Assembly: GCF_001447785.1 (NCBI RefSeq)
Contig: NW_015175426.1
Span: forward strand, 256,575-320,574
Direction: 5' to 3'
DNA from: Gekko japonicus
Taxonomy: Eukaryota
Length of the DNA: 64,000 nt
The notes beneath the pieces were generated by a model. The model was not told the origin of the DNA and ran no database searches. It saw only the letters and a list, made by a program, of their open reading frames with translations. The position numbers and the translations under genes are program-made. The number at the start of each line of letters is the position of its first letter. Position 1 is the stretch's first letter. Shown piece after piece: positions 45,101 through 64,000 of the stretch.

Positions 45101-48100
45101 AATCTGCCATGCAGTGGCTGGTGTGACCTTGGGTCAGTTACAAGTTCTTTCAGAGCTCTTTTCCAAGATCCCTCCCTCAGTGACTTTGCAGCATAGTCTG
45201 CAGCAACGTGGCCCCCTTCTCTCCTTTCGCTGGGGACTTGTTACTTCTTGGAACTAAAGAATGAGGCAGAAGCTGAACCCCCACGGGGCCCAAAGTGGCG
45301 GAAACGATTGTGTCTCAATCAAGTCTACGAAAGTGGTTGTGTAGCAAGCAAAAACACAGCCCGGCCACCCCTTCTTGAGCTTTGCCAACTATTCTTGTTT
45401 TAAACAGTCCCGGGCAGACCAGACAACCAGAAGGTTGACTGAGCCCCCAAAGGGAAACCTCTGCTGCACTTCTCTTGCAAGGTCACACGAGCAATAGATC
45501 CATCTTGTCTTTGAAAGGCTTGATTGCAGTACATTAAAAATTGGGAGGGGGGATTAATAGCACAGAATTCTGGAAATTCTGGCTTGGATCTTGCACCCTT
45601 CTGCCATGTTTTTTATGTTGTTGGGAGCTTTTTGCTTTTTTTTTTGAGAAGGGTATTCTTAAATCTGCCATGCAGTGGCTGGTGTGACCTTGGGTCAGTT
45701 ACAAGTTCTTTCAGAGCTGTTCTCTCACGAGCTCTCTCAGCCCCACCTACCTCACAGGGAGTCTGTTGTGGGGAGAGAAAGGGAAAGGAGATTATAAGCC
45801 ACTCTTTTGGGTAGTGAAGGGCAGGGTATAAATCCAATCTCTTCTTCTTCTCGTTATAACCTTCTATTTTTGCAGGTATGTGTGCCATTTATGTACTTCA
45901 TGTATACCCCACCGTTCTCCCCAGCAAGGACTCAAAGCAGCTCACATTGTTCTCTTCTCCTCCGTTTCATCCTCCCGACAACTCTGTCAGGTAGATTAGG
46001 CTAAGAGAGTGTAACTGGCCCAAGGCCAACTGGTGGGCTTCAATAGCAGAATGGGGATTCGAACCTGGGTCTCCCAGATCCTAGTCCAACATTCTCACCC
46101 ATACACCATGCCGGCTCCCAGGGGTCGTCTCTTTTTTTATAGGCTAAATATGGTAGGTCTTGCTATCTAGGAGGCACCAAGAAAATCAAAAGTTGAAAAC
46201 AGAAAAGACAGATCTTGTAGCAAAACAGAAGAAAGTGTACGATCTGTGCACGAACACTAAAGATAATCGTCAGGAGAAAAAAGGGGGCTCTTTTTGTAGC
46301 AGGAACTCCTTTGCATATTAGGCCACACACCCCTAATGTAGCCAATCCTCCAAGAGCTTACAGAGGTCTTCTTACAGGGGCTACTGTAAGCTCTTGGAGG
46401 ATTGGCTACATTAGGGGTGTGTCGCTTAATATGCAAATGAGTACCTGCTACAAAAAGAGCCCCCTTTCCTGAGCGGTTCTGTTGTTTTCCCCCCTCCAGG
46501 CTTTGACAGACCCATCAGCAAGTATTTCAAAAAGAACGCTGCCCCAACCTGGATAGCCCAGGCAAGCCTGATCTTGTCAGATCTCGGAAGCTAAGCAGGG
46601 TCGACTCTGGCAAGTACTTGGATGGGAGAGCTCCTTGGAATACCAGCCGTCTGGAGGCAGGGGCAGGCTTTATTCAGCCACCTCTCTGAATATCCTTCAG
46701 GCCCCCAGTAGGGGGTCAGTCACCAGAGGTCGCCATGACTTCCAGGTGCACGCACATACAGATGTGCATGTGTTTGAACATCTGCACCCATGTTAGTCAA
46801 TTATATGTTCAGAGCCAGATGCCAGCCTTATATCTATTGCTCACTAGATTCCCCACTGTGTGAGATTATGCTCAGCCCCCTTACCTGGCTTCCATTCCCC
46901 TCTTCCTGTCCTTGCTGCAGTCTTTCCATTTCACTCTGGATGCTGTTAAAAGAGGCTGGGGGTTGGGAGGGAGAAGAGGAGGTTAGATCCCTTTGGGGAG
47001 CACTGCGCACCCAGCTCTTAACAGGCATGCAGGCATCTCCATCTTAAAAACAGACCAAAATCCTACCTTGCAAGAGTTCTTCCAGCCAGAAGTAGGGCAG
47101 GAAGGAGAAAAAAAAAAGAGAGTGAGAAAGTCACACGCATAACAGTGGAAAGATATTTGACATTGCTGGATGCCACCGCAGCATCAAACCAAAATTACTG
47201 GATTTTTAAGCCACAGCACTTCCGGATTCCAGGAGTCCATCCCATCCCTCCAGTTCAGGGCCCCCCAACCTTTCTGCACTTGCAGGCGCCCTCTGAATTC
47301 CGACGCAGGCTGGTGGGGCTCAACCAAAAAAAATGGCTGCCGCAGGAAGGAAAGCCAGCCGCCAAATGTCCTTGAATCTGCGCAGCCACTCAGATCTCCT
47401 GTGGCCACCCAGAAGTCCTGCTGAGGCAAAAGGCCCACCTGGCCCTGCCTGCTTTTTAAAAAACACTTGGTGCTGTATGAATGGTACTTTTATAATGTGT
47501 GCATAACTGTGCTTAAGACTTCTGGTCATGCAAGCCGAAAAATAAAGTAAGTAAAACACTTGGTGGGTGCCGCAAAAAGGGTTGGAGGGCGCCCCTGGGC
47601 ACAACACTGGGGACCTACTGCCCATGTTGGACCCCCTGACCTCAATCGTCTCTGCAGTCCCTGGGCCTCTCTCCCACCTACCTTTTTCCTCTCGCTCTCT
47701 CTCCAGCTCCCCTTGCAGTCCCGACTTGGCTGCCATCTCCTCGTCTAGCTTCTCCCGCAGGGAGACAATCTCTATCCGCAGCCGTTCAGCCTGGTGCTCT
47801 GCGCTCCGAAGCTGCGATTCGACCTCCAGTCTCTGCTGGCTCACCATGCCCTGCAGACTCTGGCAGAGCGAGGGAAACGGCCCCGCCTGTCACTTGAGGG
47901 TTCTCGGCCCTCCCACACTGATGCCCCACATCCTCCACCACAATGCGAGGAAAAGCCCGGTCAGCGTTACCTGGATGGGGCTGGGCGAGCGCTGGATCTT
48001 GTCGTCCAGGTCTCGGGAAGAGGCTCTGCGCAGCCCCTCGTTTTCAGAGTGGAGGCGCTGCACTTCATAGCTCAGGCGCTTGTGGGATGCACCCAGGTCA

Positions 48101-51100
48101 GCCTAGGAGGTAAGAGGAGAGGGAGCGGATAGGAGTAAAGGTGGGCACTCTTCCGAGGCATAGAGGCTTCTCAAGGGATGCTCTGTCTTCTTGGTGCTTG
48201 GGGGGGGGTCAACAGTGGGAGGGCTTCTAATGTCCTGGCCCCACTGGTGGACCTCCTGATGGCACTGGTATTTCTGGCCACTGTGTGACACAGAGTGTTG
48301 GACTGGATGGGCCTTTGGCCTGATCCAACATTGGCGTCTCTTATGGTCTTATGTTAAAATAGAAGAAGAGGAGGAAAAGGAGGAGGAGGTTGGATTTATA
48401 CTCCACCCTTCACTTGGAGTCTCAGAGCGGCTTACAATCTCCCTCCCTTCCTCTCCCCACTACAGACACCCTGTGAGGTAGGTGGGGCTGAGAGAGCTCT
48501 GAGAGAACTGCTCGTGAGAGAACAGTTATGAGAGAACTTGTGACTGACCCAAGGTCACACCAGCAGGTTGCATGTGGAGGAGGGGGGAAACATAGAATCA
48601 CAGAGTTGGAAGGGGTCATCCAGGCCATCCCCCTGCTCAATGCAGGACCAGTCTAGGGCACCCCTGACAAGTGTTTGTCCAGCCACTGCTTAAAGACTGC
48701 CAGTGAGGCGGAGCTCACCACTTCCTTAGGCAGCTGATTCCACTGCTAAACAACTCTTACTGTAAAAATGTTTTCCCTAATATCCAGCCGGTACCTTCCG
48801 GCCCTTCATTTAAACCCATTATTGCGACTCCTATCCTCTGCTGCCAACAGGAACAGCTCCCTGCCCTCCTCTGAGTGACAGCCCTTCAAATACTTAAAGA
48901 GAGAGATCATGTTCCTCCCTCAACCTCCTCTTCTCCAGACTACACATCCCCAAGTCCCTCAGCCTTTCCTCCTGGGGCTTCGTCTCCAGGCCCCTGATCA
49001 TCCTCGTCGCTCTCCTCTGCACCCGCTCCATTCTGTCCACATCCTTTTTGAAGTGAGGCCTCCAGAACTGCACACAGTACTCCAGGTGCGGCCTGACCAA
49101 TGCAGTGTACAGTGGGACTATGACATCTTGCGATTTGGATGTTATCCAAATCAAACCTGGTTCTCCAGATCAAAGTCCGCCCCTCTTAACCACCACACCA
49201 AACTGTCAAGAGAAAGAAAGCCACTCTGTGGCCCACCAGCAACCGCTACTCTCCGCTGCAGCAGGAAGTTCAGGCTGTGCACTTTGCTAGCCTTCTTCCA
49301 CCACCACAGCGAGAAGCTGAACACTTCGGCCTGTAGTCCTGTCCTGGGATTCTGAAGGGCCAGCTTGAGTGTTACAAGGCCCACGCAGAAGGCTTTGAGA
49401 AGTGTCTCCCCTTGGCAGCAGACATCACATTTAAAAGCCTCTTGTCCTGTGCCTTTGCTGAAATGCACGGAAGAGCTCCGTGATGCCGTTCCTCACAGCT
49501 GGCACAAGGGATGCTACGTGCCCTGCCGACAATGCGCAAGAGCTGAATTCACAGTCAGCAAAGTAGCACAGCCCCCCTCCCCAAGACAGACGGCCACTGC
49601 CAGTGACGGGAAGGGAGGGACTCTGTGGCTCAGGTGCAGAGCCCCTGCTTTGCCTGCAGAAGGTCCCTGGTTCAATCCTCACCATCACCAGTTAAAAGGA
49701 TCAGATAGCAGGCGATGTGGAAGACCACAGAGAGCCGCTGCCAGCCTGAGCAGGCAATACCAGGCCAAGGGTCAGATCCGGTAGAAGGCAGCTTCATGTG
49801 TTTCATGTGCTGCACTGGCAGGGAGGAGCAGCATGCCTTTGGGCTAGTGCAGAGGGGAGAGGCATCATACCCCCCCCCCCGGCCCACACAGCGGTTCTTC
49901 CCAGGAACTTTCATGGGGGGGGGGGGCACTTTAACACAAACCAGTTCCCAGCCAACACTCACTGTCAACCGTCCCCTTCTAAACCACAGCTCTGCAAACC
50001 CCCTCCATGTGCTGCCCAGCCTTTCCCAGGCCTCCCCGTCCTTGCTCACCGTCCCCGCACGCAAATCGCACTCACCAGCTGCTCCTGAGTCTGCTGCTGG
50101 CTCTTGCTCACCGTGTTTTGGAGGCTCCGGAGAAGCTCCTCGGATTTTCGGATCTGAGCACTAAGGACCTGGACCTGCGCCAAGGAAAAAGCGAGAGGTC
50201 CCGGAGTGTGGAGAGGACGGGATGCAGGCCCAGGGTGGGTTTCAGCAGCAAAAAAAACCCTCCCCCCACAAGCAGCATGCCACCCACACGTACCTGCTTG
50301 TTGCACTCCTCACTGCTGCGGTTCAGGATGTCCTCCAAGTTGGCCTTCTCCCGAGAAGTTTTTTCCACAGACTCCCGTTGCTGCCGCACCTGGGGGAAGG
50401 GATCGGGGCCACGACGAGGGTGAGAGAGGGAAGCTGGCGTCTCACGCTGACTATTCCCCAGCCTCCTAGGGAGGGGCTGTGGCTCACTGGAAGGCCCTCT
50501 GCTTTGCAAGCAGAAGGTCCCTGGTTCAATCCCCGGCATCTCTAGTCAAAAACGGATCACGTAATGATGTGATGTGAAAGGACCGCACTTGAGACCCTGG
50601 AGAGCTGCTGCCAGCCTGAGTAGGCCACAGAGACCTCGATGGACCAAGGGCCAGACTCAGTATGCTTCAAGTGTTCTTCTTTCGACCTCCCCCTCCCACT
50701 AAGAATGTATCAGGGTCCCACTGGCAGTCACGGGAACGATGGCAGAAGTCGGATGGCCAGCGACTGCAGCTGATCACGGCTTATTTCCCAGTGAAAATAA
50801 CTGTGCTTGTTTTTACATGGGAGAATGGAATAGGAGGAAAGAGAAGCTGTTAAGTTGGGCCAGGCTAGCGTGCCTGTCCTCGGAGAGCCACAGAAGTGCT
50901 TTGTGGTCCTTGCCCACTAAAAATGCAGGAGTGTAACACTACCCCCCTAAGCAGATTTAAAAAGGTAAAGGTAAAGGTTTCCCTTGCTCGAAAGTCAGTC
51001 GAATCCGACTCTAGAGGGCAGTGCTCATCTCCGTTTCCAAGCCAAAGAGCCAGCGCTGTCCAAAGACTTCTCTGTGGTCATGTGGCCGGACATAATTGCT

Positions 51101-54100
51101 GGCGATGTTGCTGCCTTTGAAACTAAATTATTATAAGTTTAACATAACTATTTTCCATGCAGCTTCAGGTGGAGTTTTATTGATTACGGTTTATTCCAGG
51201 ATATTATGAAGGTAATTAAGAATTTACAATGCTGAGCTGGATTTAAGAAGCTGACACCTTTAAATATTGGATTACATCTGAGGAAGACTATAAAGTCGAA
51301 ATGAGTTCACAACCGGGTACTCATTATGTTGGACTATGTGTACTTTTTTGCAATATTGTATAAGTAAGAAGGTTGGATAAATTGTCGCACTTTTAGAAGG
51401 TTTTAGAAAAGCAATGTAAATCTTATAAATGTTGTTCATATCACAGAGTTTGCTTGTGGTTTTTTTCCTGTGGATATCTGTGATCCCTTTTTGTTTTGTT
51501 TTGTGCCTTTGAAACCCGGCTGATGGGAAATCCCACCAAGAATCAATCTGATACTCGTGGCCTCCAAGTATGACCACCGAGTGTGACTGCAGTGTCCAGA
51601 ACTGTCCTGTCCTGCCCAAGCCCAGCAGAAGCGATCCCAGGGCTCTCTGCCCTCCCTCTCCTTCTCTCACAAGTCCCCCATCATCCAGTCCATCTACTGG
51701 GACAAGCATCCCTTCCCCTCAGGGGTCATTTTGTAGAAAAAGAGCTAGGGGAACTCATTAGCATAACTCATTAGCATANNNNNNNNNNNNNNNNNNNNNN
51801 NNNNNNNTCATTATGTTGGACTATGTGTACTTTTTTGCAATATTGTATAAGTAAGAATGTTGGATAAATTGTTGCACTTTTATAAAGTTTTAGAAAAGCA
51901 ATGTAAATCTTTGAAATGTTGTTCATATCACAGAGTTTGCTTGTGGTTTTTTCCTGTGGATGTCTGTGATCCCTTTTGTTTTGTTTTGTGCCTTTGAAAC
52001 CCGGCTGATGGGAAATCCCTCTCCTTCTCTCACTAGTCCCGCATCATCCAGTCCATCTACTGGGACAGGCATCCCTTCCCCTCTTCTCTGTGCCCTTTCT
52101 GACTACAGGAGATGGGCTTGTGAATTCTCTCACAAGGGCTTTTCCATTTAGAAGGAAGCCAAAGGTTGAGGTCAAGCCAGATCCGATCCAGCCTTCTGTT
52201 CCAACCCTAGGATTCAGGCAGACACCCCCCTCCCCGGGCAAAGCTGTCCCTCTCATATTTAGAAGTGTGCTACAACGGAAAGGCTGCAAAGAGGCTTTGT
52301 CTGCACCCTGAAACGTATGCCGCTTTCTAGTCTCCTGCACGTTCCACTCTTTTCCTGAACACACACACACACACACCTTGTTGTGAAGTTGCGTCCATTC
52401 TGAGTCAGGCACCAGCTGGAACCCAGCGGGCGGGAGGTAGATGGTCTCCGGCACCAGGGTCCCACTGGAGGAGGCAATTGATATTGTCTCAGGGCTGGGG
52501 GAGCGTCTGCGTCGGATCGGGGGGCCCGGGCTTGGTACCAGCAGGGACGAAGAGGCGATGGAGACACTGTCGAGGCCAGAGGCAAATTTCTCAGCCACGC
52601 CTCCCCCCTCCAAGGTCCCGTGGTCGTCTCCCAGTCCGTCAGGGGGTCCTGAGTCAGCGAGTAGGGATTCCGATGAGCTAAAGAGGCCGCCCTGACAGCA
52701 AACAAGCCATGAATTAATAAGGGCCCGTCACAGAAATTCTCAAAATGCCAAAGCAGCCTGGCTGGGGTGAGAGTACAACTGCTTGTTGTTGGCAGGAAAA
52801 CCTGTTGCCCCAGCCCTGTAATTTCGGGGGCCAAAGAGAAGGTCCAAAATTACACGAACTGGAGAACTTCTAATTGGAAACACTCAACCGGTTTTCACAA
52901 ATGATTCACCCAACAGGATTTTACCAGAATAGCAGCCGTCGCTTAAGACTTTAATTCGTCCTGCCACTATTCTGGCACCCGTCAGTCAAGTTCATGTCAC
53001 TGGCTAATTCACACGCTGACGTTCTACTGGCTTAGAGATTTTTTAAAAACCCTACAACATCCCTAGCTTTCCAAAGGCACGTATCGAAATACCAATTTAT
53101 TTGGGAATGACCAGTCCCCATGAGCGCTTTTGGCAGAGATCCTCCCTTTTCCTGACTGCACTCTCCCCCCACCCAGGCAGCTCTGGCATTTGATATCCTC
53201 TTTCCATTTCCTCCCCAGCTCACCTGCTCGCTCTGCAGGTCCCGAACCAGCCCCTCCGCCCTGACCAGCTTCCCCTTCAGCTCTTCGATTTCCTGCTCCA
53301 TCGGCAGCACAATGGCCCGGAGGCGCTCCGTGTCTTCCTGTGCCTGCAGGGAGAGAGGAAACACACCAGTCAGAGGCCCACCTAGAGGCTCTCTCCCTCC
53401 CCGACTGGACTGGAAAGGGGTCCGCGGCTGCTCCCAGGTCACCTTTTCCATCTGTTTCTCCAAGGAGTCCGACGGGCTGCTCCGTGGCAGGAGGCGGCTC
53501 CACACATTCTCCCGACTGTCGCGTTCTAGAGCCGAAAGACGCGCCTCGTAACTAGAGATGGTGTCTGTAGAAAAAGAACCCTTGTGTTGACGTGTACACA
53601 AAGCCAGCTTGACCCTGGGGTCCTACCCGGCCCAGCCACCCACCCCGGTTCTCAGAGGTAACATTGGAGAGCCTGAACAGAACCTGGGTTTTTAAAGTCA
53701 GCGTCCTTCTGAATGCATGTATGGGGGGGGGGGTGTAAGCTGTATCAGAGGGAGGCTTTGGCCAACAGAACCCTGCTTAAGCATCTTCCCGTCGGCCACT
53801 TGGAGAGACAGGGTGTTGGACTAGATACCTTTTTGGTCTGATCCAGCAGGGCTCTTCTTTTGTGCTCAAGTATGCCCAGCCCGTTCCTTCCCCCTCCCGC
53901 TTGACACCTGGGTCTCTCACCTTTCAGAATAGCCTGCAGTGAGGCCACCTCTTCTTGGCACTGGCGCTGGACAGCTTCCACAGCCTCATGCTTGGTGCTC
54001 TCACTCACAGCAGCCACAGCCCGGACGGTTTCCACCTCAGCCACTGCAGCTGCCAACTGGACCCGCAGGTTTTGGATCGTCTCCTCAGGGTCGGGGTCTC

Positions 54101-54460
54101 TGGGGAGGTCTGGGCCAGGGGGAGCGCCCACCTCCTGCACCTGCTGAGGCTCTTGCAGTGGGGGGGGGAATGGGGGGAGTTATAACTGGGTCTGACTCTG
54201 AACCTAGGACCTCGAAGTTCCCCCCTTCCCGCCCATCCTGAACCTCTGATCCTAGAATCCCTCTGACCTTTAACCCCAAAGTGATCCAACAGCTTGAACT
54301 GGGACAAACACCCTACCCGTGACCTCTGACCTCCCCCATTATCTGTGACGTCAACCACAGCGCTGCTCTAAGGGGGGCCCCAAGGGCGTGGCTTCCCGTC
54401 GTCCCGCCCCCGCTCCCTGCCCATGACGAGCGGGGGGGGGGCTCGCGCGTACCTTCCCAT
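42148..54460 (-). CDS. RABEP2: Rab GTPase-binding effector protein 2 (rabaptin-5 beta). Exons: 54460-54453 (tentative), about 54099 (or 54151)-53921, 53564-53443, 53343-53224, 52691-52377, 50389-50294, 50174-50076, 48102-47971, 47859-47682, 47078-47067, 46955-46885, terminal 42210-42148 (tentative)
   Basis: [30 protein letters not shown]|DTISSYE; DSLEKQMEK|[23 protein letters not shown]; [23 protein letters not shown]; [13 protein letters not shown] all match RABEP2 as remembered. First and last exons are less certain. Confidence 0.88.
42795..43654 (+). mobile_element. L2-clade LINE reverse transcriptase fragment ending at an assembly gap
   Basis: [74 protein letters not shown]; +1 frameshift in a C-run near 43238; CpG retained. 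L2 3' tails at about 44160-44370 and 56810-57210; older L2 at about 11130-11620 and 28630-29330 (-). Confidence 0.88.
44598..45718 (+). repeat. Tandem duplication, 2 x about 560 bp
   Basis: 44598-45157 and 45158-45718 nearly identical (ORFs 44963 and 45524 share the same N-terminal translation). Confidence 0.9.
46283..46465. mobile_element. Palindromic MITE related to the 1498-1893 family
   Basis: GGGGCTCTTTTTGTAGCAGG...CCTGCTACAAAAAGAGCCCC; almost entirely self-complementary. Confidence 0.75.
46547..46760 (+). mobile_element. 5S rRNA-derived SINE (SINE3 type)
   Basis: GCCTGATCTTGTCAGATCTCGGAAGCTAAGCAGGGTCG...GTACTTGGATGGGAGA...GGAATACC 5S-like head plus a non-5S tail shared with other copies. 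Confidence 0.75.
47067..47078 (-). CDS. RABEP2: RABEP2 12-nt microexon (ELLQ)
   Basis: ggaag|AACTCTTGCAAG|gtagga, phase 1-1; gives EEK-ELLQ-ASFNSIQ, aligning with human EET-EVLE-ASLCSL. Confidence 0.7.
48590..49145 (-). mobile_element. CR1 LINE 3' fragment inserted within a SINE
   Basis: [44 protein letters not shown]; ends in the CR1 ATTCTATG-type tail. Confidence 0.88.
49615..49805 (+). mobile_element. tRNA-derived SINE (other copies at about 9685-9880, 23975-24175, 50470-50670, 57215-57315)
   Basis: GTGGCTCAG...GCAGAAGGTCCCTGGTTCAATCC A/B boxes followed by a shared non-tRNA body. Confidence 0.65.
51321..52083 (+). repeat. Duplicated sequence flanking an assembly gap (probable two haplotypes)
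   Basis: 51321-51720 repeated at 51808-52083 with SNPs and a 122-bp deletion. Confidence 0.8.
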
Positions 54461-56818: not shown

Positions 56819-57754
56819 GGCGGCTCCTACCTGGTGAAATGAGCTTCCTGAGGAGATCAGGGCCCTGCGGGACCTTGTGCAGTTCCGCAGGGCCTGCAAG
56901 ACGGAGCTCTTCCGCCAGGCTTATGAATAGGAGCCGCCACGGCCACTTACACCACCGCGCCTTTATAGAGAGAGATCACTGGGGGGGTTGGGTAACATCT
57001 TTCCACCACCCCAGCCTTCCCTCCTGCTACGCAAGATGTTAGGAGTCTATTGTGCATCCGTCGAATTGATGTTAATCTGTTTTAAATTTGTATTCTGTAT
57101 TCTGTAATTTTGTATACTGAACGCACTTGGTGCCCTATGTGAGCCGCCCTGAGCCCATTCGCGGGGAGGGCGGGGTATAAATGTAATAAAATAATAATAA
57201 ATAAATAAATAAGAAGGTCAAAGGTTCAGTCCGTGGTATCTCCGGTTAAAAGGATCAGGTAGTAGGTGATCTGATAATACTGACCTTGATGGACCAATGG
57301 TCTGATTCAGTATAAAAATACTACCTATGTACATATGCTTGGAGTGGTCAACTGGCTTGAGCTGGCCCTACCAAAGCTTGTTTATGGGTGCCCCAGTGTT
57401 CAAATCCCAGTTCTGGCTACATTTGTAGCGTGAATCAAACAAGGGACTAAGAACTCTAGATGAGGAACTGAAAACCAACTTTGCCCCCAGTTAGGTAATC
57501 TGGGATTTTCTAAGTCCAGCCCAAAACCTCAGCCACTTTTTGAGTGGCTGGTGTCGTTCCATGAGAATTTATGAGTGATGGGATTCTGGTCCATTTGGCT
57601 CTGCTGCTTTTACGCTTAGCTTTGGGGATTAGTCAACAATATACACAGAAGCTCCCACACCCAAGCCCCCTTGTAGCCCACTGCTGCATTAACAGAGATT
57701 GTGATTTACTGCTGCTGTAAACAGAGGAACATACGAAGATTGTGAGCAGGTGCA

Positions 57755-57760
57755 TTTATT
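57755..57760 (-). terminator. Polyadenylation signal of the I-domain/coiled-coil gene
   Basis: AATAAA (minus) about 160 nt after TGA at 57921. Confidence 0.65.
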
Positions 57761-57920
57761 GGCATCACGGGCACATCAGCATTCGGTCAAAAACTAGATC
57801 AAGAATAGCATATGAGAGGACTCCCGTATGCCTCCTCCTTCCATCCAGACCGACTTTAAGCTTTCCTTCCCACCAGTCACTTCCTGCTGCAGATCATGTT
57901 ACCAGCACCCACCGCCTGGC

Positions 57921-60900
57921 TCAGGACAAGAGATGGGAATCCCGCCCACATTTCCCCTGCCTGATGGCCAGCGAGTCCAGCTTGGCACTGATCGCATCCA
58001 GGCCGCTCAACACTCGCTCCAGTTTCTGCAGCACCTGCGGGTCAGTGTGTGCAGCGCAGGTATCGGGTGACTGCGGCGGAATGATTGGCTGTGGCACAGC
58101 TGGGCCTAAAAAGGGCACAGAGCAAAAACTTGCATCAGAGCAATCCCGTCCTCAGTCCGCTAAAACCTCCTGGAGCTCAGTGAGCCAAAATCAGAAGTGC
58201 CAGAAAGTTGGAACTACTTTCATTGGATGCCCACAGGTGCTCGTGTTAGGGTGTCATCAAAAGGATCGGACAGGTGGACCGCCTTCCTTTTTGAAGAAAG
58301 GCTGGAGCACTTGGGGCTTTGCTCTTAACTAAGGGGGATGGGGACATGATAGACGTTTACAAAAAAAGATATATTCAGGAGGTAGCCATGGTGGTCTTCA
58401 GTGGAGCAACTAGAGTCTGGTAGCACCCTGGAGACCAACAAGGTTTTCGGGGTCTAAGCTTTCATGGTCTGGTTTGGTTTTTTTTACATTTTTGTGTCTC
58501 GCTCTCTGTGCGTGTGTGCGCACCTTTACCTAGAAGTCATGACAACCTCTGGCAACTCCTACTGGGGCATGGAGGATATTCGGAGAAGTAGCTCGATCGC
58601 CTGCCTCTGGCCTCCTGGCCCTGGTCTTGCTTGGAGGCCTCCCTTCCAAATACTTGCCAGAGTCAGCCCTGCTTAGTTTCCTAGATCTGACAAGATCGAG
58701 CTTGCCTGGGCTATCCAGGTCAGGGTAGGGTCTAAGCTTTCAAGAGTCGAAGTTCCCTTCATCAGTTTCTAACGAAGGGAGCTTTGACTCTGGAAAGTGT
58801 ATACTCGACAAATCTTGTTGGTCTCTAAAGGGCTATTGGACTCAAATCTAGCTGTAAAAGGATGGATGCAGGGGAGAAAGATGGACATGGTGGACAGAGA
58901 GAACTTTTTTCTCCCGTTCTCATAATCTGAACACAGGGTCACTAGATGAAATGGACAGGTGGTAGATTCAGGAGAGACAAAAATGAATTACTGTTTGACA
59001 TTTCTACCCTGCTTCTCTCCCCAGTAGGGTCCCAAAAGCAGTTTACAATGTTATTTTCCCCTCCTTCAATTTATTCTCACACCAGCCTGTAAGGATTCAA
59101 AACTGGGTCTCCCAAGTCTCATATTCCACCCACTATATCACACTAGTTGTCTCTCAAAAGGAAGTACACAAGTACAATCAATGTACATAAATCACTGCCA
59201 CTCGATGAGATGAATGCTACATGGTGAATGCTCCAAGCAGGGCACCAAACACCTGCCTCTTAATTACAGGAAATCCTGTTCAGTTCACCACCCCTGGGCT
59301 TCTGCTGTTTCACCAGGCGGGGATAGATCACAATACTCCACTGGCTATTGTTGCTGCTGAAAACTTCTATTGGGGAGGGGGGGGGAGGACCTATAAAAAG
59401 GCATTAAAAAGCTGCCCATTTCTGACAGAGAATTTCCCACTGTCCCCCTCTTCCCAGTCTCCTCCCCCAAAGTCACCGTACCACGTCTGGAACAAATCTT
59501 CTCTCGCAGCTGGTGGGGGGTGTTCCCCAAGTCTGTGAAGTGTCTCACGTGGAACATGTGCTCTGTGGCAGGAGCTGAAGCAATGGCCTGGAGCTCCTGT
59601 TGCGCAGTTGTGCTGAGGAAGCCCAAACCGACCTTCCCAGGAGAAAACACAATCAATAAGGGCCACCAAACCTTGCCTTCAAGAGCTACAGGGGTGGGGG
59701 TAGGCTTGGAAGAAGCGACAGAAAAATCCAGCAGACTTGCCTAGGTGTCTCTCTGGAAGCACCATTCAAGGTGGGCAGCACGGAGTCCCAGCCCAAGTGC
59801 GCCAACACACATGGCTCTTGTAATTGGTGTGTTATGAGCAGGGCTATTTTTGGGCAGGAACGCACAGGAACGGAGTTCCGGCTGGCTCCCGAGTTGGCCA
59901 CGCCCAGCAGGAACTCATTAGCATAATAGGCCACACCCAACAGGAGAAACTCATTAGGATTGGCTACATTAGGGGTTTGTGGCCTAACATGCAAAGAAGT
60001 TCCTGCTACAAAAAAAGCCCTGGGTTTTGACCACAAACAAGGTAAACAGAATTACAAGCAAAAGGTGGGTGTGGCTGGATAACCACACTTCTGGTAACAT
60101 GGGGGTGCGGCCTAATGTGCTAATGAGCTGTGCTGGTAGGGGTGTGGCCTAATATGCTGATGAGTTTCTGCTGTTGGGTGTGGCCTATTATGCTAGGCTT
60201 TTCCTGCTGGGCTTTTCCTACAAAAAGAGCCCTGTTTGCAACTATTCTCCAGGTTACAGAGATCAGTTCTCCCGGAGAAAATGATTGCGTTGGAAGACGG
60301 ACTCTATGGCATTTACAGCTATTCTCCAGGTTACAGAGATCAGTTCTCCCAGAGAAAATTATTGCTTTGGAAGACGGACTCTATGACATTATACCTCAAC
60401 AGAGGTCCCTCCCCAGGCTCTACCTCCCAACTTTCCAGGTATTCCCCAACCCAGATCTGGAAATCCTAGCAGAAACTGGAGGTTACACATCAGCGTCTCC
60501 CACACAGAGGAGATGTGAGTCTTCAACAGGACACATCTAGGGGCACACAGAGGCCAAAGCTTCAAATCTGAGCACAGGCACCCTGCGGGAAGTATATAGG
60601 ATGCTCTTATCACACAACAAAGGAAGGAGCTGATGTTAGTACAGGGTAGACTCATGTTATTGCCAGGTCCCCCCTGGCCACCACTGGGATGGGAATGTGG
60701 GGTTTCCAGATCCAGGTTGGGAGACTCCTGGAGATTTGGGGATGGAGCCTGGGGAGGACAGAGGCCTCAGTGGGGTACAGTGCCATAGAGTCCACCCTCC
60801 AGAGCCTCCATTTCCTCCGGGGGAACTGATCTCTGTACTCTGGAGATGCGCACAATTCCAGGGGATTCCCCAGGTCCCACCTGGAGGGTGGCATCCCTTG

Positions 60901-63900
60901 TCATCACTTTTCATCATTTATACAGCACTTCTAGAGTTCTTGGCTAGGCTTTGTTTGATGAGGTGGGCAAGTAATTGGTCCTGTTTTACAGACAGGGAAT
61001 CAAGGAACTCTCACGACAACTAAAGCTGCCCAGTCATTATGGGGCAGAGATGGGATCTGAGCGAACGTCTCAAGCCTGTCCAGTTCTGGCTGTACGGACC
61101 AGAGGCAGATGAGCAGACTGCAGAGCCACAGCTGAAGGAACAGCAGCAATCCACTGGAGGCACAGTCCCGCCCACCCCAAATCTGGTTGACTTTGGGGCG
61201 AGGAAGAAAAATATCTCCAGGATGGCTCTGCCTGCGCAAGCTCCTTAAAACAGAGGTCCCCAATGCATGGTGCTCGTAGGCACTATGGTGCCCACCAGCA
61301 CCTTTTCTGGCTCCCGCCCAGTGATTTTAGGAAGTGGGTGGGGCCAGGTAGGGCTTTTGCCCAGCAAGGCTTCTGACTGGCTACTGGAGATTTGATTGGC
61401 TGTGCTGATCTGTTAAAATGTTGCTTTGGCAACAGCGGCCACCACAGCACAAGGACCTGCACTGCGTGACGGAAGGTAAGCTGTGGCAATCGTTCTGTGG
61501 TTGGCTTCGCTTCGTGCGGCAGCCATTTTGTGGCAGCCATTTTATTGCCGTGCCCACCATGTCATGACCCACCAAATTCGCAGGCTTGAAAAGGTTGGGA
61601 CCCCTGCCTTACAGCAGCATTCTAAGACAGTTGTCTTCAACTCATGGATTGGACCCTCAGGTCCCTGACTGCTCAAGATCCTAAGTAGCCACCACTTCTT
61701 TTTTCTTGGGGGGGGGAAGTACTTGTGTGTGTGTGTGTGTGTGTGCACGCATGTGCTTACGAGCCTGGCAACCCCTAGTAGGGCTTGGACATTTCAGAGA
61801 GGTAGCCACCATTTTTTACTTTCTCTTGGATGGACCTACTGCTGGTGAACACCCATAGATAGCAAAGCCATACCTCCTGCCTCTCTCTGCACACGTACAG
61901 AGAGTAGCCGGATGGCACAGCCAAGTTGTTCAGTGTGGATTCTTCCAGGCTCTGACTCTTTTGGCTGGTTTCTCACTACAGGGCACTTCCCAGTGCCTGC
62001 CTTGCATTTTCTGTCCTAGGCTGTCTTGGACCAATGCCTCCAGTCCTGGCTTTGATACTGGTGAGACTGCAACTACGGCTCATTCTGTTCCTCTCAGGCG
62101 ACAGTGTCACAAGCCTTCTTGAAGCATGTTTGCAGATTAGTGGATCCCATATCAGGTCTGAAAGGACTGAAGACCACTGTTCTGGGATACCCGCACGCTT
62201 ATGTCTCTGTGTGGAGCCATCTTGGAGACTCTTCCCCCACATTGGCCCATTACGCATGCACATCTTACTGCAGATTTTCAGAGCAGTAAGCCTTTAAGCT
62301 TTACGTCAAATTCTGTGTCCACATTATGCACCATTCTTTTTCCTCTGGTGTATTTATTCCACAGCTACAATAAAAAAATATATACTTAGCTAAATTGAGG
62401 TGGAACCTCACTTGTGACATGTGTGGGGGAGTGTCCAAAGTTTTTTTTTAATTTATGCAATTGCCCTATCACAGCTGCTCAGTAGTGTTCAGCAAGCACC
62501 TTCCATTTAAATCCTCTCGGTTCAGGTTTTGCGCATGCATTTTATTGTTAGTTCGTTGAATGAAAGGGAACACAGAGGAAGGAAGGCAAAGGGAGGGAGG
62601 AGGCTGATGTTGAAACTGACAAGACTTTTTTTTTTTGAAACTGACAAGCAGCTGGGAAGCCCCATTTTTCATATTGTGGCGCAACAAGGGATTCTCTGCT
62701 GTGTTATCAGCCACTGTGAAAAACGGGAAGGAATCACACGACCTCATAATATGGGGGAACATGTTGAGTGTACATAATGCACAGTAGAACCCACTGACAC
62801 TGGCATTGCAAGCTGTGATAGTTGGCAATCGTGTATGTGTGTGTGTGTGTCTCTGTGTGTGCATGCCTGTGCAAAGTTGGCTGCAACTCCACCAAGTTTT
62901 TCACAGGGCTGCAATTTGCATGGGGGAGGAGTCCTCTGGCAGAAACTCTGGAAAGCTTTTTTAGTCTTGTGCCACTAAAGTGGGGGGGGGGATGGGGGGT
63001 AGCACAGCTGCATACTAACGCTGATTTCCTGCCCTACCTTGCAAGTTTGCGTGGTTTTCTCTTTGTGATTCTCTAATTTGATCCTGCACACTGGTCATGA
63101 TCTTGGCAGTTTTTTAAAAGCCTGCCCTGTGCAGATTGCATTCCTTCTCGATCCTAAGCGATTCTTAAGTTTGGTGGTTCATAGAAGGTCCATGTAACTC
63201 AGCCGCCATTTTAATGTTAGGCTTCCAGTTACTGCCAAAATGCCCCCCCCAAAAAACTTTGTTCACTAAAGCATTAAAGGGAATAATGTTTTCAAAGCTT
63301 TAGACTTTGCATCCCAGTGTCTCTTTCTCTTTACATCTCATGTCAATTTCATTCTGTGCTGAGGATCCCCCCTTTTATTTTGTTTGCAGGCAGCACTGAA
63401 ATCTTTTTTCTTTTTGCACTGGGGATACTGCCATTTGCTTCGATTCCAATCTCCCTTTCAAGTCAATACCCACAGGGAACTAAACTTTGTGCAGCTCCTT
63501 TTCAACTCCCCCCCCTCCAGTCAATTTAATTTTTTGTATTCAGCAATCCAAGACAACCCATAGTCTCCTATTGCTAGACTCATGCTGCTTGTTAAAAAAA
63601 AAGCAAAATTTAAAAATGAGGGTGAAATGGAACTTGTACACTGACAAAAGGGGGAGAATGGTGAAAGGTGCAGAATGGGCAGAATGACCTTGATGTGGGT
63701 GGGGGAGTGACCTTCAAGGGGTGGCAAAAGGGAGGAAAATCAATGCAGAACAACAAAGAAAACCCAACAGATGTGCACAGTGAAACTGACGGAAAACATC
63801 TGTGTATAATAGGCCTCTGTCTGTGTCCTCACTACAAGAAGCTGTAAAGGAAGTTAGGACCTCAAGGTAATGGATTCTAGACAAAATCTGCACCCCAAAT

Positions 63901-64000
63901 GTTCTGCCTCATGGTGAAAGAAGGGAAGTAGATAAGAAAGAGCAGATACTTAGACTTCACCCCAACTGCGATGCGCACAACTCCAGCTCTGTCTGCCTCT
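57921..64000 (-). CDS. Integrin alphaM/alphaX-like I (vWA) domain protein ending in a matrilin-like coiled coil (5' part outside window). Exons: >64000-63961, 59632-59482, 58105-57921
   Basis: EADRAGVVRIAVG|VGLGFLSTTAQQELQAIASAPATEHMFHVRHFTDLGNTPHQLREKICSRR G resembles ITGAM EADREGVIRYVIG|VGDAF...[38 protein letters not shown], with the same intron position and a 151-nt phase 0/1 exon; phase-1 terminal exon GPAVPQPIIPPQSPDTC...VLQKLERVLSGLDAISAKLDSLAIRQGKC...*. Confidence 0.8.
58410..58855. mobile_element. Inverted Penelope-like pLTR interrupted by a 5S-derived SINE (about 58465-58727, minus)
   Basis: 15-bp TSD GGGTCTAAGCTTTCA at 58450-58464 and 58728-58742; the insert carries a 5S-like head on the minus strand. 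Confidence 0.7.
59839..60234 (-). mobile_element. hAT-type MITE, same family as 1498-1893, opposite orientation
   Basis: Near reverse complement of 1498-1893; same TIRs; TSD not preserved. Confidence 0.8.
61251..61606. mobile_element. hAT-type MITE (CAGGGGTCCCCAA TIR)
   Basis: CAGAGGTCCCCAA ... GGTTGGGACCCCTG; degenerate 8-bp TSD CCTTAAAA / CCTTACAG. Confidence 0.6.

Follow-up and report, generated by a model that had tools for sequence, protein, structure and literature searches.

What becomes of an integrin I domain when the rest of the integrin is no longer encoded with it? The question is raised by one end of a 64,000-nucleotide stretch of the Gekko japonicus contig NW_015175426.1 (hereafter the window), where the last three exons of one gene, which we call A, B and T and which all lie on the minus strand (Table 1), encode the C-terminal part of an I domain followed by a short tail with two cysteines. 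The initial annotation, made from the letters alone, proposed that a lineage-specific duplicate of an alphaM/alphaX-type integrin gene had become a probably secreted, disulfide-linked oligomer converging on the architecture of matrilins. Our analysis indicates that the gene is most probably the G. japonicus orthologue of a family found only in squamates, whose product would be a secreted and oligomeric CD11b/c-type I-domain protein that works independently of a beta subunit. The architecture is a property of this conserved squamate gene family and not of the window locus alone.

The coordinates originally given for the three exons were all correct when compared with the sequence and its translations. 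Exon A translates as …EADRAGVVRIAV(G) and is followed by gtgaag. Exon B, with an ag acceptor before it and gtacgg after it, translates as VGLGFLSTTAQQELQAIASAPATEHMFHVRHFTDLGNTPHQLREKICSRR (VGLGF...HQLREKICSRR) plus one carried base and codes for the end of the I domain, including helix alpha7 (…QLREKIC), and for the residues SRR, so that the integrin KIF ending is indeed replaced by KICSRRG in the window. Exon T follows tttag and, with the carried base, reads G-PAVPQPIIPPQSPDTCAAHTDPQVLQKLERVLSGLDAISAKLDSLAIRQGKCGRDSHLLS-stop, the TGA lying at 57923-57921. In order, it encodes a Pro-rich linker, Cys16, a coil of 3.5 heptads (V24, L28, V31, L35, I38, L42 and L45), Cys52 and a short tail.

The joining of these exons was followed in four runs from the same species aligned to positions 57001-60000, one of assembled contigs (X1) and three of raw-read RNA-seq (X13-X15). 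A 650-nt X1 contig with a depth of 55 spans 57553-58104 joined to 59481-59575; the joint skips 1376 nt bordered by CT..AC on the plus strand, that is GT..AG on the minus strand, and in its "cut +1" reading falls exactly at 59482|58105, the junction that had been predicted from the letters. This is the sole joint listed in X1 for the exon B donor. Two further X1 contigs, each of 127 nt (depths 144 and 90), run along exon B to 59633, where the sequence passes into the reverse complement of the exon A end. Exon depth in X1 is 55-170 and intron depth 0-2.5 outside interspersed repeats, with zero depth in the A-B intron across 59633-60000 except where a repeat (about 59800-60000) has heavy coverage in each of the four runs. 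Because the introns are nearly empty and the run holds just 134 million letters, X1 is read as RNA and not as genomic DNA. The 650-nt contig continues for at least 200 nt beyond the AATAAA hexamer and ends at 57553, with no canonical hexamer near this end. The AATAAA is present as first annotated but is only a putative poly(A) signal, since the transcript reads through it. A separate X1 contig with a depth of 2.3 covers 57386-57536.

Searching 1.84 billion representative proteins with the 60-residue tail encoded by exon T returned three snake proteins and two others, and only the matches to the present family were genuine. The proteins P0002 (4269 aa) and P0005 (1005 aa) were dismissed, their scores being built up from many weak matches to repeats inside unrelated proteins. 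The best full-length match was a 291-aa Crotalus protein named "integrin alpha-X-like", and searches from this protein and with a family profile extended the family to about 25 squamate species, with complete proteins of 282-308 aa. It is present in all major squamate groups: geckos (Paroedura, Sphaerodactylus, Eublepharis and Heteronotia), skinks and cordylids, lacertoids including an amphisbaenian, anguimorphs, iguanians and snakes. Outside squamates, the same searches returned only fragments of ordinary integrins that cover the von Willebrand factor A (vWA) domain alone. Complete members were thus found only in squamates, and the family tree follows squamate groups, in line with the lineage-specific origin proposed at first. 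The gene is already modelled in RefSeq and is not unannotated; the RefSeq and GenBank names of the family ("integrin alpha-M/X/D-like") are automatic, and a full-text literature search found no paper describing such a protein family.

The window exons are closest to gecko orthologues, the species' own protein being absent from the collection searched, and tblastn matches to these orthologues end at or beside the window exon borders. Identity in exons T and B is 93% and 78% for the gecko transcript P0028, 89% and 78% for Eublepharis and 85% and 71% for Paroedura, beside a recorded range of 78-80% for exon B against gecko orthologues. In the orthologues, the last I-domain exon and the tail exon are joined at ..KIC-x-x-x-G|P, to which the window copy conforms. 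In the Paroedura and Sphaerodactylus RefSeq models (P0024 and P0026), KICSR[HR]G is followed by an additional seven residues (TVAHGGG or TVTGERG), as from a donor further downstream; the upstream donor is the one used by the window transcript, P0028, Eublepharis and Heteronotia. Paroedura has Ser instead of the Cys that precedes the coil. For P0028 (298 aa, complete) and P0025 (242 aa), the encoding transcript contigs measure just 1162 and 961 nt, so that the short mRNA also exists in other species.

To which vWA domain the head belongs was read from structures of known proteins. A phmmer search of PDB with exon B matched only the I domains of alphaM (E 6e-6) and alphaX (E 3e-5), aligned along alpha7 to …QLREKIF; with alphaM the alignment runs residue by residue over positions 139-185 of the 1bhq I-domain chain. 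In place of a tree with named alphaM, alphaX, alphaD, alphaL and matrilin paralogues, we relied on PDB scores of a profile built from 16 full-length relatives and on five fragmentary integrin outgroups. The profile scored 246 bits on alphaM and 242 bits on alphaX, about twice its scores on alphaE (139 bits) and alphaL (133 bits), and 93 bits on alpha1. Its best 60 PDB matches were integrins, collagen VI and a mussel thread protein, collagen VI reaching a higher total score only through the summing of eight domains. These scores assign the head to the CD11b/c type, as initially annotated, and not to the vWA domains of matrilin or collagen. Two further likenesses to alphaM and alphaX are that the isoleucine of the alpha7 "isoleucine socket" is kept in all family members and that the exon border after ..AVG coincides with the break point of fragmentary integrin gene models (P0034).

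The full-length orthologues supply the parts that lie beyond the window, among them the signal peptide and the DxSxS motif of the metal-ion-dependent adhesion site (MIDAS). Their N-terminus has a hydrophobic stretch followed by small residues (…GAAES), with the look of a cleaved signal peptide, and the family alignment contains no second hydrophobic span, no other 19-residue stretch reaching the hydrophobicity of a membrane span. In the alignment, the signal peptide is joined straight to a conserved segment, FDLSDAL…PQR…CP, that is collinear with the integrin stretch between propeller blade 2 and the I domain (turtle CFLLDQSLQQPQRIP…ECP, for comparison). VWA families are the sole Pfam match, corresponding to one vWA domain. 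An FG-GAP propeller was not found, the orthologues having 282-308 aa with Pfam VWA alone, and neither were legs (thigh, calf), a transmembrane helix or GFFKR, exon B being spliced into exon T and its stop codon and no hydrophobic span following the signal peptide. The view that this is not an ordinary integrin is upheld by these orthologues. Nothing else in the window matched an integrin fragment in a tblastn search, a weak test in that the query reaches just about 45 residues past the I domain.

Residue counts over 24 aligned members, some of them partial, show which features of the I domain have been kept (alphaM numbering). At the MIDAS, D140 is D in 21/22, S142 is S in 22/22, S144 is S in 21/22, T209 is S or T in 24/24 and D242 is D in 20/24 members. 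The socket isoleucine I316 is Ile in all 24, whereas the neighbouring F317 is Cys in all 24, and E320 has become H (18), R (5) or Q (1), the integrin outgroup having E (KIFAIEG). In alphaM and alphaL, the I domain is coupled to the beta2 I-like domain through E320, which serves as an intrinsic ligand; a domain no longer in communication with a beta chain would be expected to lose this residue, as every member has. A further Cys, in the CPN motif before strand beta1, is kept in 21/21 members. The vWA domains of vWF-A, collagen VI and matrilin have a closing disulfide at the domain ends; the CPN Cys and the new KIC Cys likewise sit at the two ends of the domain and may form an intradomain disulfide. 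The Pro-rich linker is less conserved (49% mean pairwise identity), while the coil equals the vWA domain in conservation (66% each). Each of the two Cys that flank the coil, which had been noted in the single gecko copy, is kept in 23/24 members; the pre-coil Cys is single in lizards and part of a C-x-x-C in snakes, and the family C-terminus consists of GKC and a few residues.

How the tail would act was addressed by modelling three copies of the window's own tail in three runs with three controls. All three runs gave the homotrimer a score of 0.44, whereas the best control reached 0.02; at least 75% of contacts are common to the runs, and the partner predicted local distance difference test (pLDDT) was at least 61 (about 62). 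In the calibration of the modelling tool, the mark was reached by 21/30 proteins solved as pairs of one chain and by 0/23 solved as single chains, a guide that is only rough for three copies and for eukaryotes. Residues in register make the closest contacts (24-24, 28-28, 31-31, 35-35, 38-38, 42-42 and 45-45), and the tail is predicted to form a parallel bundle on V24, L28, V31, L35, I38, L42 and L45, the same V-L-V-L-I-L-L residues that had been picked out as the heptad core. With Leu at a and Val or Ile at d, trimer and tetramer are equally plausible. The tail had no PDB match and no Pfam family at E up to 10, in searches where short coiled coils diverge fast and the HMMER filters drop weak matches; across PDB, Pfam and the 1.84 billion representative proteins it has no detectable relative outside the family. 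No link of the tail to matrilin, COMP or another solved coil came out of the PDB and Pfam searches.

These properties of the tail also bear on the alternative that survives best, in which the I domain is free and secreted as well and the tail is a docking or retention peptide whose Cys link other proteins, leaving the product as a monomer or in a hetero-complex. The coil is short, with about 3.5 heptads, it matches no Pfam or PDB coiled-coil family, and self-association is read from a single model score (0.44, with pLDDT of about 62), all of which this alternative accommodates. It would leave unexplained a 4-3 hydrophobic pattern that is regular and as well conserved as the vWA domain (66% in both), flanking Cys kept in 23/24 members each, as in the disulfide-locked coils of matrilin and COMP, and modelled contacts that are in register and far above those of the controls. 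We therefore regard it as unlikely, and favour an oligomerising tail.

A second alternative is an ordinary full-length integrin alpha gene, with its other exons misassembled or elsewhere, or with T serving as terminal exon only in a minor alternative transcript. The 5' part of the gene does lie beyond the window and the automatic names are those of integrins, but the short layout recurs in about 25 independent assemblies, many with contigs of more than 100 Mb, and the P0028 and P0025 transcript contigs are just 1162 and 961 nt long. Exon B has no listed joint in X1 other than that to T, and the Glu that couples to the beta subunit is lost in all members. The neighbourhood points in the same direction: a Rabaptin-family (RABEP2-type) gene occupies 46882-54140 on the same (minus) strand and starts at 54140, about 3.8 kb after the stop codon, and there is therefore no room for further integrin exons, none having been seen ahead of the RABEP2 promoter in the initial annotation. 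The open reading frames 53748-54140 and 53035-53601 match Pfam Rabaptin (E 6e-16 and 1e-8), and a snake "RABEP2-like" model matches exons down to 46882. This snake model (P0020, Protobothrops) fuses I-domain exons to Rabaptin exons, a chimera that is either an annotation error or a read-through transcript; together with the Rabaptin exons of the window, it shows that the neighbourhood is common to a viper and G. japonicus. A full-length integrin gene is accordingly very improbable.

Equally little credit can be given to a transcribed pseudogene, the decaying remnant of an integrin duplicate. Only a fragment of the gene is visible in the window, three RNA-seq runs have no reads on its exons, and a MIDAS residue is lost in some orthologues; against these stand open reading frames that are intact in all major squamate lineages with Cys, MIDAS and heptads kept, correct splicing at a depth of 55-170 in X1, and within-species variants that are mostly synonymous. 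In the last respect, the X1 individual has four coding differences from the window, three of them synonymous and one a conservative Thr20Ser in the tail, towards the residue of other geckos and the family consensus. The maximum-likelihood tree, calculated with five integrin fragments as outgroups and without four partial rows (Sciurus, Heteronotia, Python X2 and Tiliqua X2), is also not that of a decaying gene: the family is one clade (support 100/100) on a stem of 0.92, with short internal branches after this long stem and well-supported subclades of geckos, skink-cordylids, lacertoids, anguimorphs, acrodont iguanians, pleurodont iguanians and snakes. Such a pattern indicates one gene per species, inherited vertically since before the squamate radiation and after a burst of change.

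Least probable of all is a divergent matrilin by descent, which has in its favour the common architecture (a vWA domain ending in KIC, then a Cys, then a C-terminal coil) and a similar matrilin-1 stretch cited in the initial annotation, and against it the head's scores on alphaM (246 bits) and alphaX (242 bits), a list of best 60 PDB matches made up of integrins, collagen VI and a mussel thread protein, a pre-domain segment collinear with integrin, the lack of an EGF domain and of a Pfam match for the tail, and the lack of a PDB match for the tail at E up to 10 in a database where a matrilin coiled coil is among the solved structures.

Several points nevertheless weigh against a secreted, oligomeric and metal-dependent I-domain protein. 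Only about 110 C-terminal residues are encoded in the window, which includes no more than the C-terminal third of the I domain, and the 5' exons, with the signal peptide and the MIDAS of the G. japonicus copy, lie beyond 64000. The oligomer comes from one computational test in which eukaryotic passes can reflect memory of solved coiled coils and which does not give the number of chains, and the AlphaFold monomer is poor (pLDDT 54, from a 16-sequence alignment). A MIDAS residue is lost in both Crotalus species (TGG for TDG), in Hemicordylus (HGS for DGS and TAG for TDG) and in Tiliqua isoform X2 (TKG), these being alignment rows P0004, P0006, P0022 and P0023; metal-dependent binding may therefore not be universal in the family, the losses possibly reflecting a shift to a metal-independent function or errors in models or sequences. 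Depth on the exons is zero in the three raw-read runs X13-X15, from which we take expression to be tissue-restricted or low and not ubiquitous; it amounts to no expression in those samples and is no evidence against the gene. Finally, secretion, binding and disulfides are all predictions.

Table 1. Features of the I-domain gene in the window (positions in the 64,000-nucleotide stretch; UTR, untranslated region).
Feature	Position	Strand	Basis
Exon A, 3' end of the penultimate I-domain exon	63961..64000, runs on past the window edge	-	translation …EADRAGVVRIAVG; gtgaag donor next
Intron A-B, 4328 nt, gt..ag borders, many interspersed repeats	59633..63960	-	sequence, RNA depth
Exon B, last I-domain exon, 151 nt, phase 0 in, phase 1 out	59632-59482	-	translation, PDB phmmer, tblastn, RNA
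Intron B-T, 1376 nt, GT..AG	58106..59481	-	skipped by X1 RNA contig
Exon T, coding part of the terminal exon	57921..58105	-	translation, tblastn, homotrimer model
3' UTR, minimum extent	57553..57920	-	X1 contig, depth 55, unbroken from 58104 to 57553
AATAAA hexamer within the 3' UTR	57755..57760	-	sequence; X1 contig reads through

Besides these features, interspersed repeats of the introns and the downstream region, at 59800-60000, 57101-57400 and 58500-58800, have very high depth in all RNA runs (about 4500 per strand at 59900-60000 in X13), with many variant letters, "goes back" joints and loose ends; this combination marks them as an abundant transcribed repeat family that does not belong to the I-domain gene. 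In the A-B intron, two near-identical units of about 75 nt (…ccatagagtccgtcttccaa…gggagaactgatctctgtaacctggagaatag…) lie about 85 nt apart at 60236-60420 on the minus strand and are probably part of a repeat element. A run of N (X in the translation of the open reading frame) at about 51771-51926, inside the Rabaptin region, is an assembly gap or a masked stretch.

Taken as a free, oligomeric I-domain protein, the family would have originated from a duplicated integrin alpha gene of the CD11b/CD11c type that kept the signal peptide, the short pre-I-domain stretch and the I domain, lost all propeller, leg, membrane and cytoplasmic exons and gained a new 3' exon for the Pro-rich linker and the Cys-flanked coiled coil. 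The product, of about 295 aa, would most likely be secreted, and would most likely bind acidic ligands by means of its own MIDAS, independently of a beta subunit. The tail would most likely hold a parallel, disulfide-stabilised trimer or tetramer, and so would place several I-domain heads on one stalk and provide avidity. The CD11b/c-type ligands iC3b, fibrinogen and ICAMs would be the obvious candidates if the protein serves in immunity, and a role in the matrix is an alternative. More speculatively, and with a doubtful chance of being right in every part, the protein could be a humoral counterpart of CR3/CR4: a secreted, disulfide-locked trimer or tetramer, its alpha7 held in one affinity state by a CPN-KIC disulfide, that binds iC3b-coated, fibrin(ogen)-coated or ICAM-bearing surfaces without beta2, either as an opsonin or bridge or as a decoy that tunes adhesion.

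Comparison with known systems places the family outside each of them. By sequence it is closest to the alphaM and alphaX I domains, with the MIDAS kept in most members, but its I domain is not inserted in a beta-propeller and comes without FG-GAP, legs, membrane span or GFFKR; it has H, R or Q for the Glu that follows alpha7 and binds the beta-subunit MIDAS, an invariant Cys for the Phe next to the socket Ile, and its own signal peptide and predicted oligomerising tail. By these defining features the family is not an integrin subunit. Matrilins are secreted vWA proteins in which the vWA domain is closed by terminal Cys residues and a Cys-flanked C-terminal coil forms disulfide-linked trimers or tetramers. 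The layout is alike, and the tail of the family is predicted to do likewise, whereas the head is of the integrin type, the vWA domain is single and EGF is lacking, the tail matches no Pfam family or solved coil, the pre-coil motif is a single Cys (lizards) or C-x-x-C (snakes) and not C-x-C, and the gene lies beside RABEP2. The likeness to matrilins, read from the sequences, is one of architectural convergence and not of membership or descent, which bears out the convergence first proposed, the layout being common and the head of the integrin type by profile score. Collectins and similar proteins (MBL, COMP) put low-affinity heads on a short parallel coil with interchain disulfides and so gain avidity for repetitive surfaces. 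The analogy would be limited to this working principle, the head of the squamate family being a metal-dependent integrin I domain and not a C-type lectin or other module, with no collagen stalk and no sequence relation found.

To our knowledge, integrin I domains otherwise occur as inserts in membrane-bound alpha/beta heterodimers and nowhere else, and the beta subunit sets their affinity via the alpha7 helix. The squamate family is a natural experiment on this arrangement, conserved across lizards and snakes, in which an I domain has been freed, has lost the coupling Glu, has acquired a new invariant Cys next to the allosteric Ile and has been put on a predicted oligomerising stalk. About 25 RefSeq and GenBank entries named "integrin alpha-M/X/D-like" are accordingly not integrin subunits. 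If the proposed reading is true, an I domain can be a soluble recognition module, and the multivalent or conformation-locked I domains engineered in laboratories would have a natural template in this family. It would also be a lineage-specific addition to the innate immunity or the matrix biology of reptiles.

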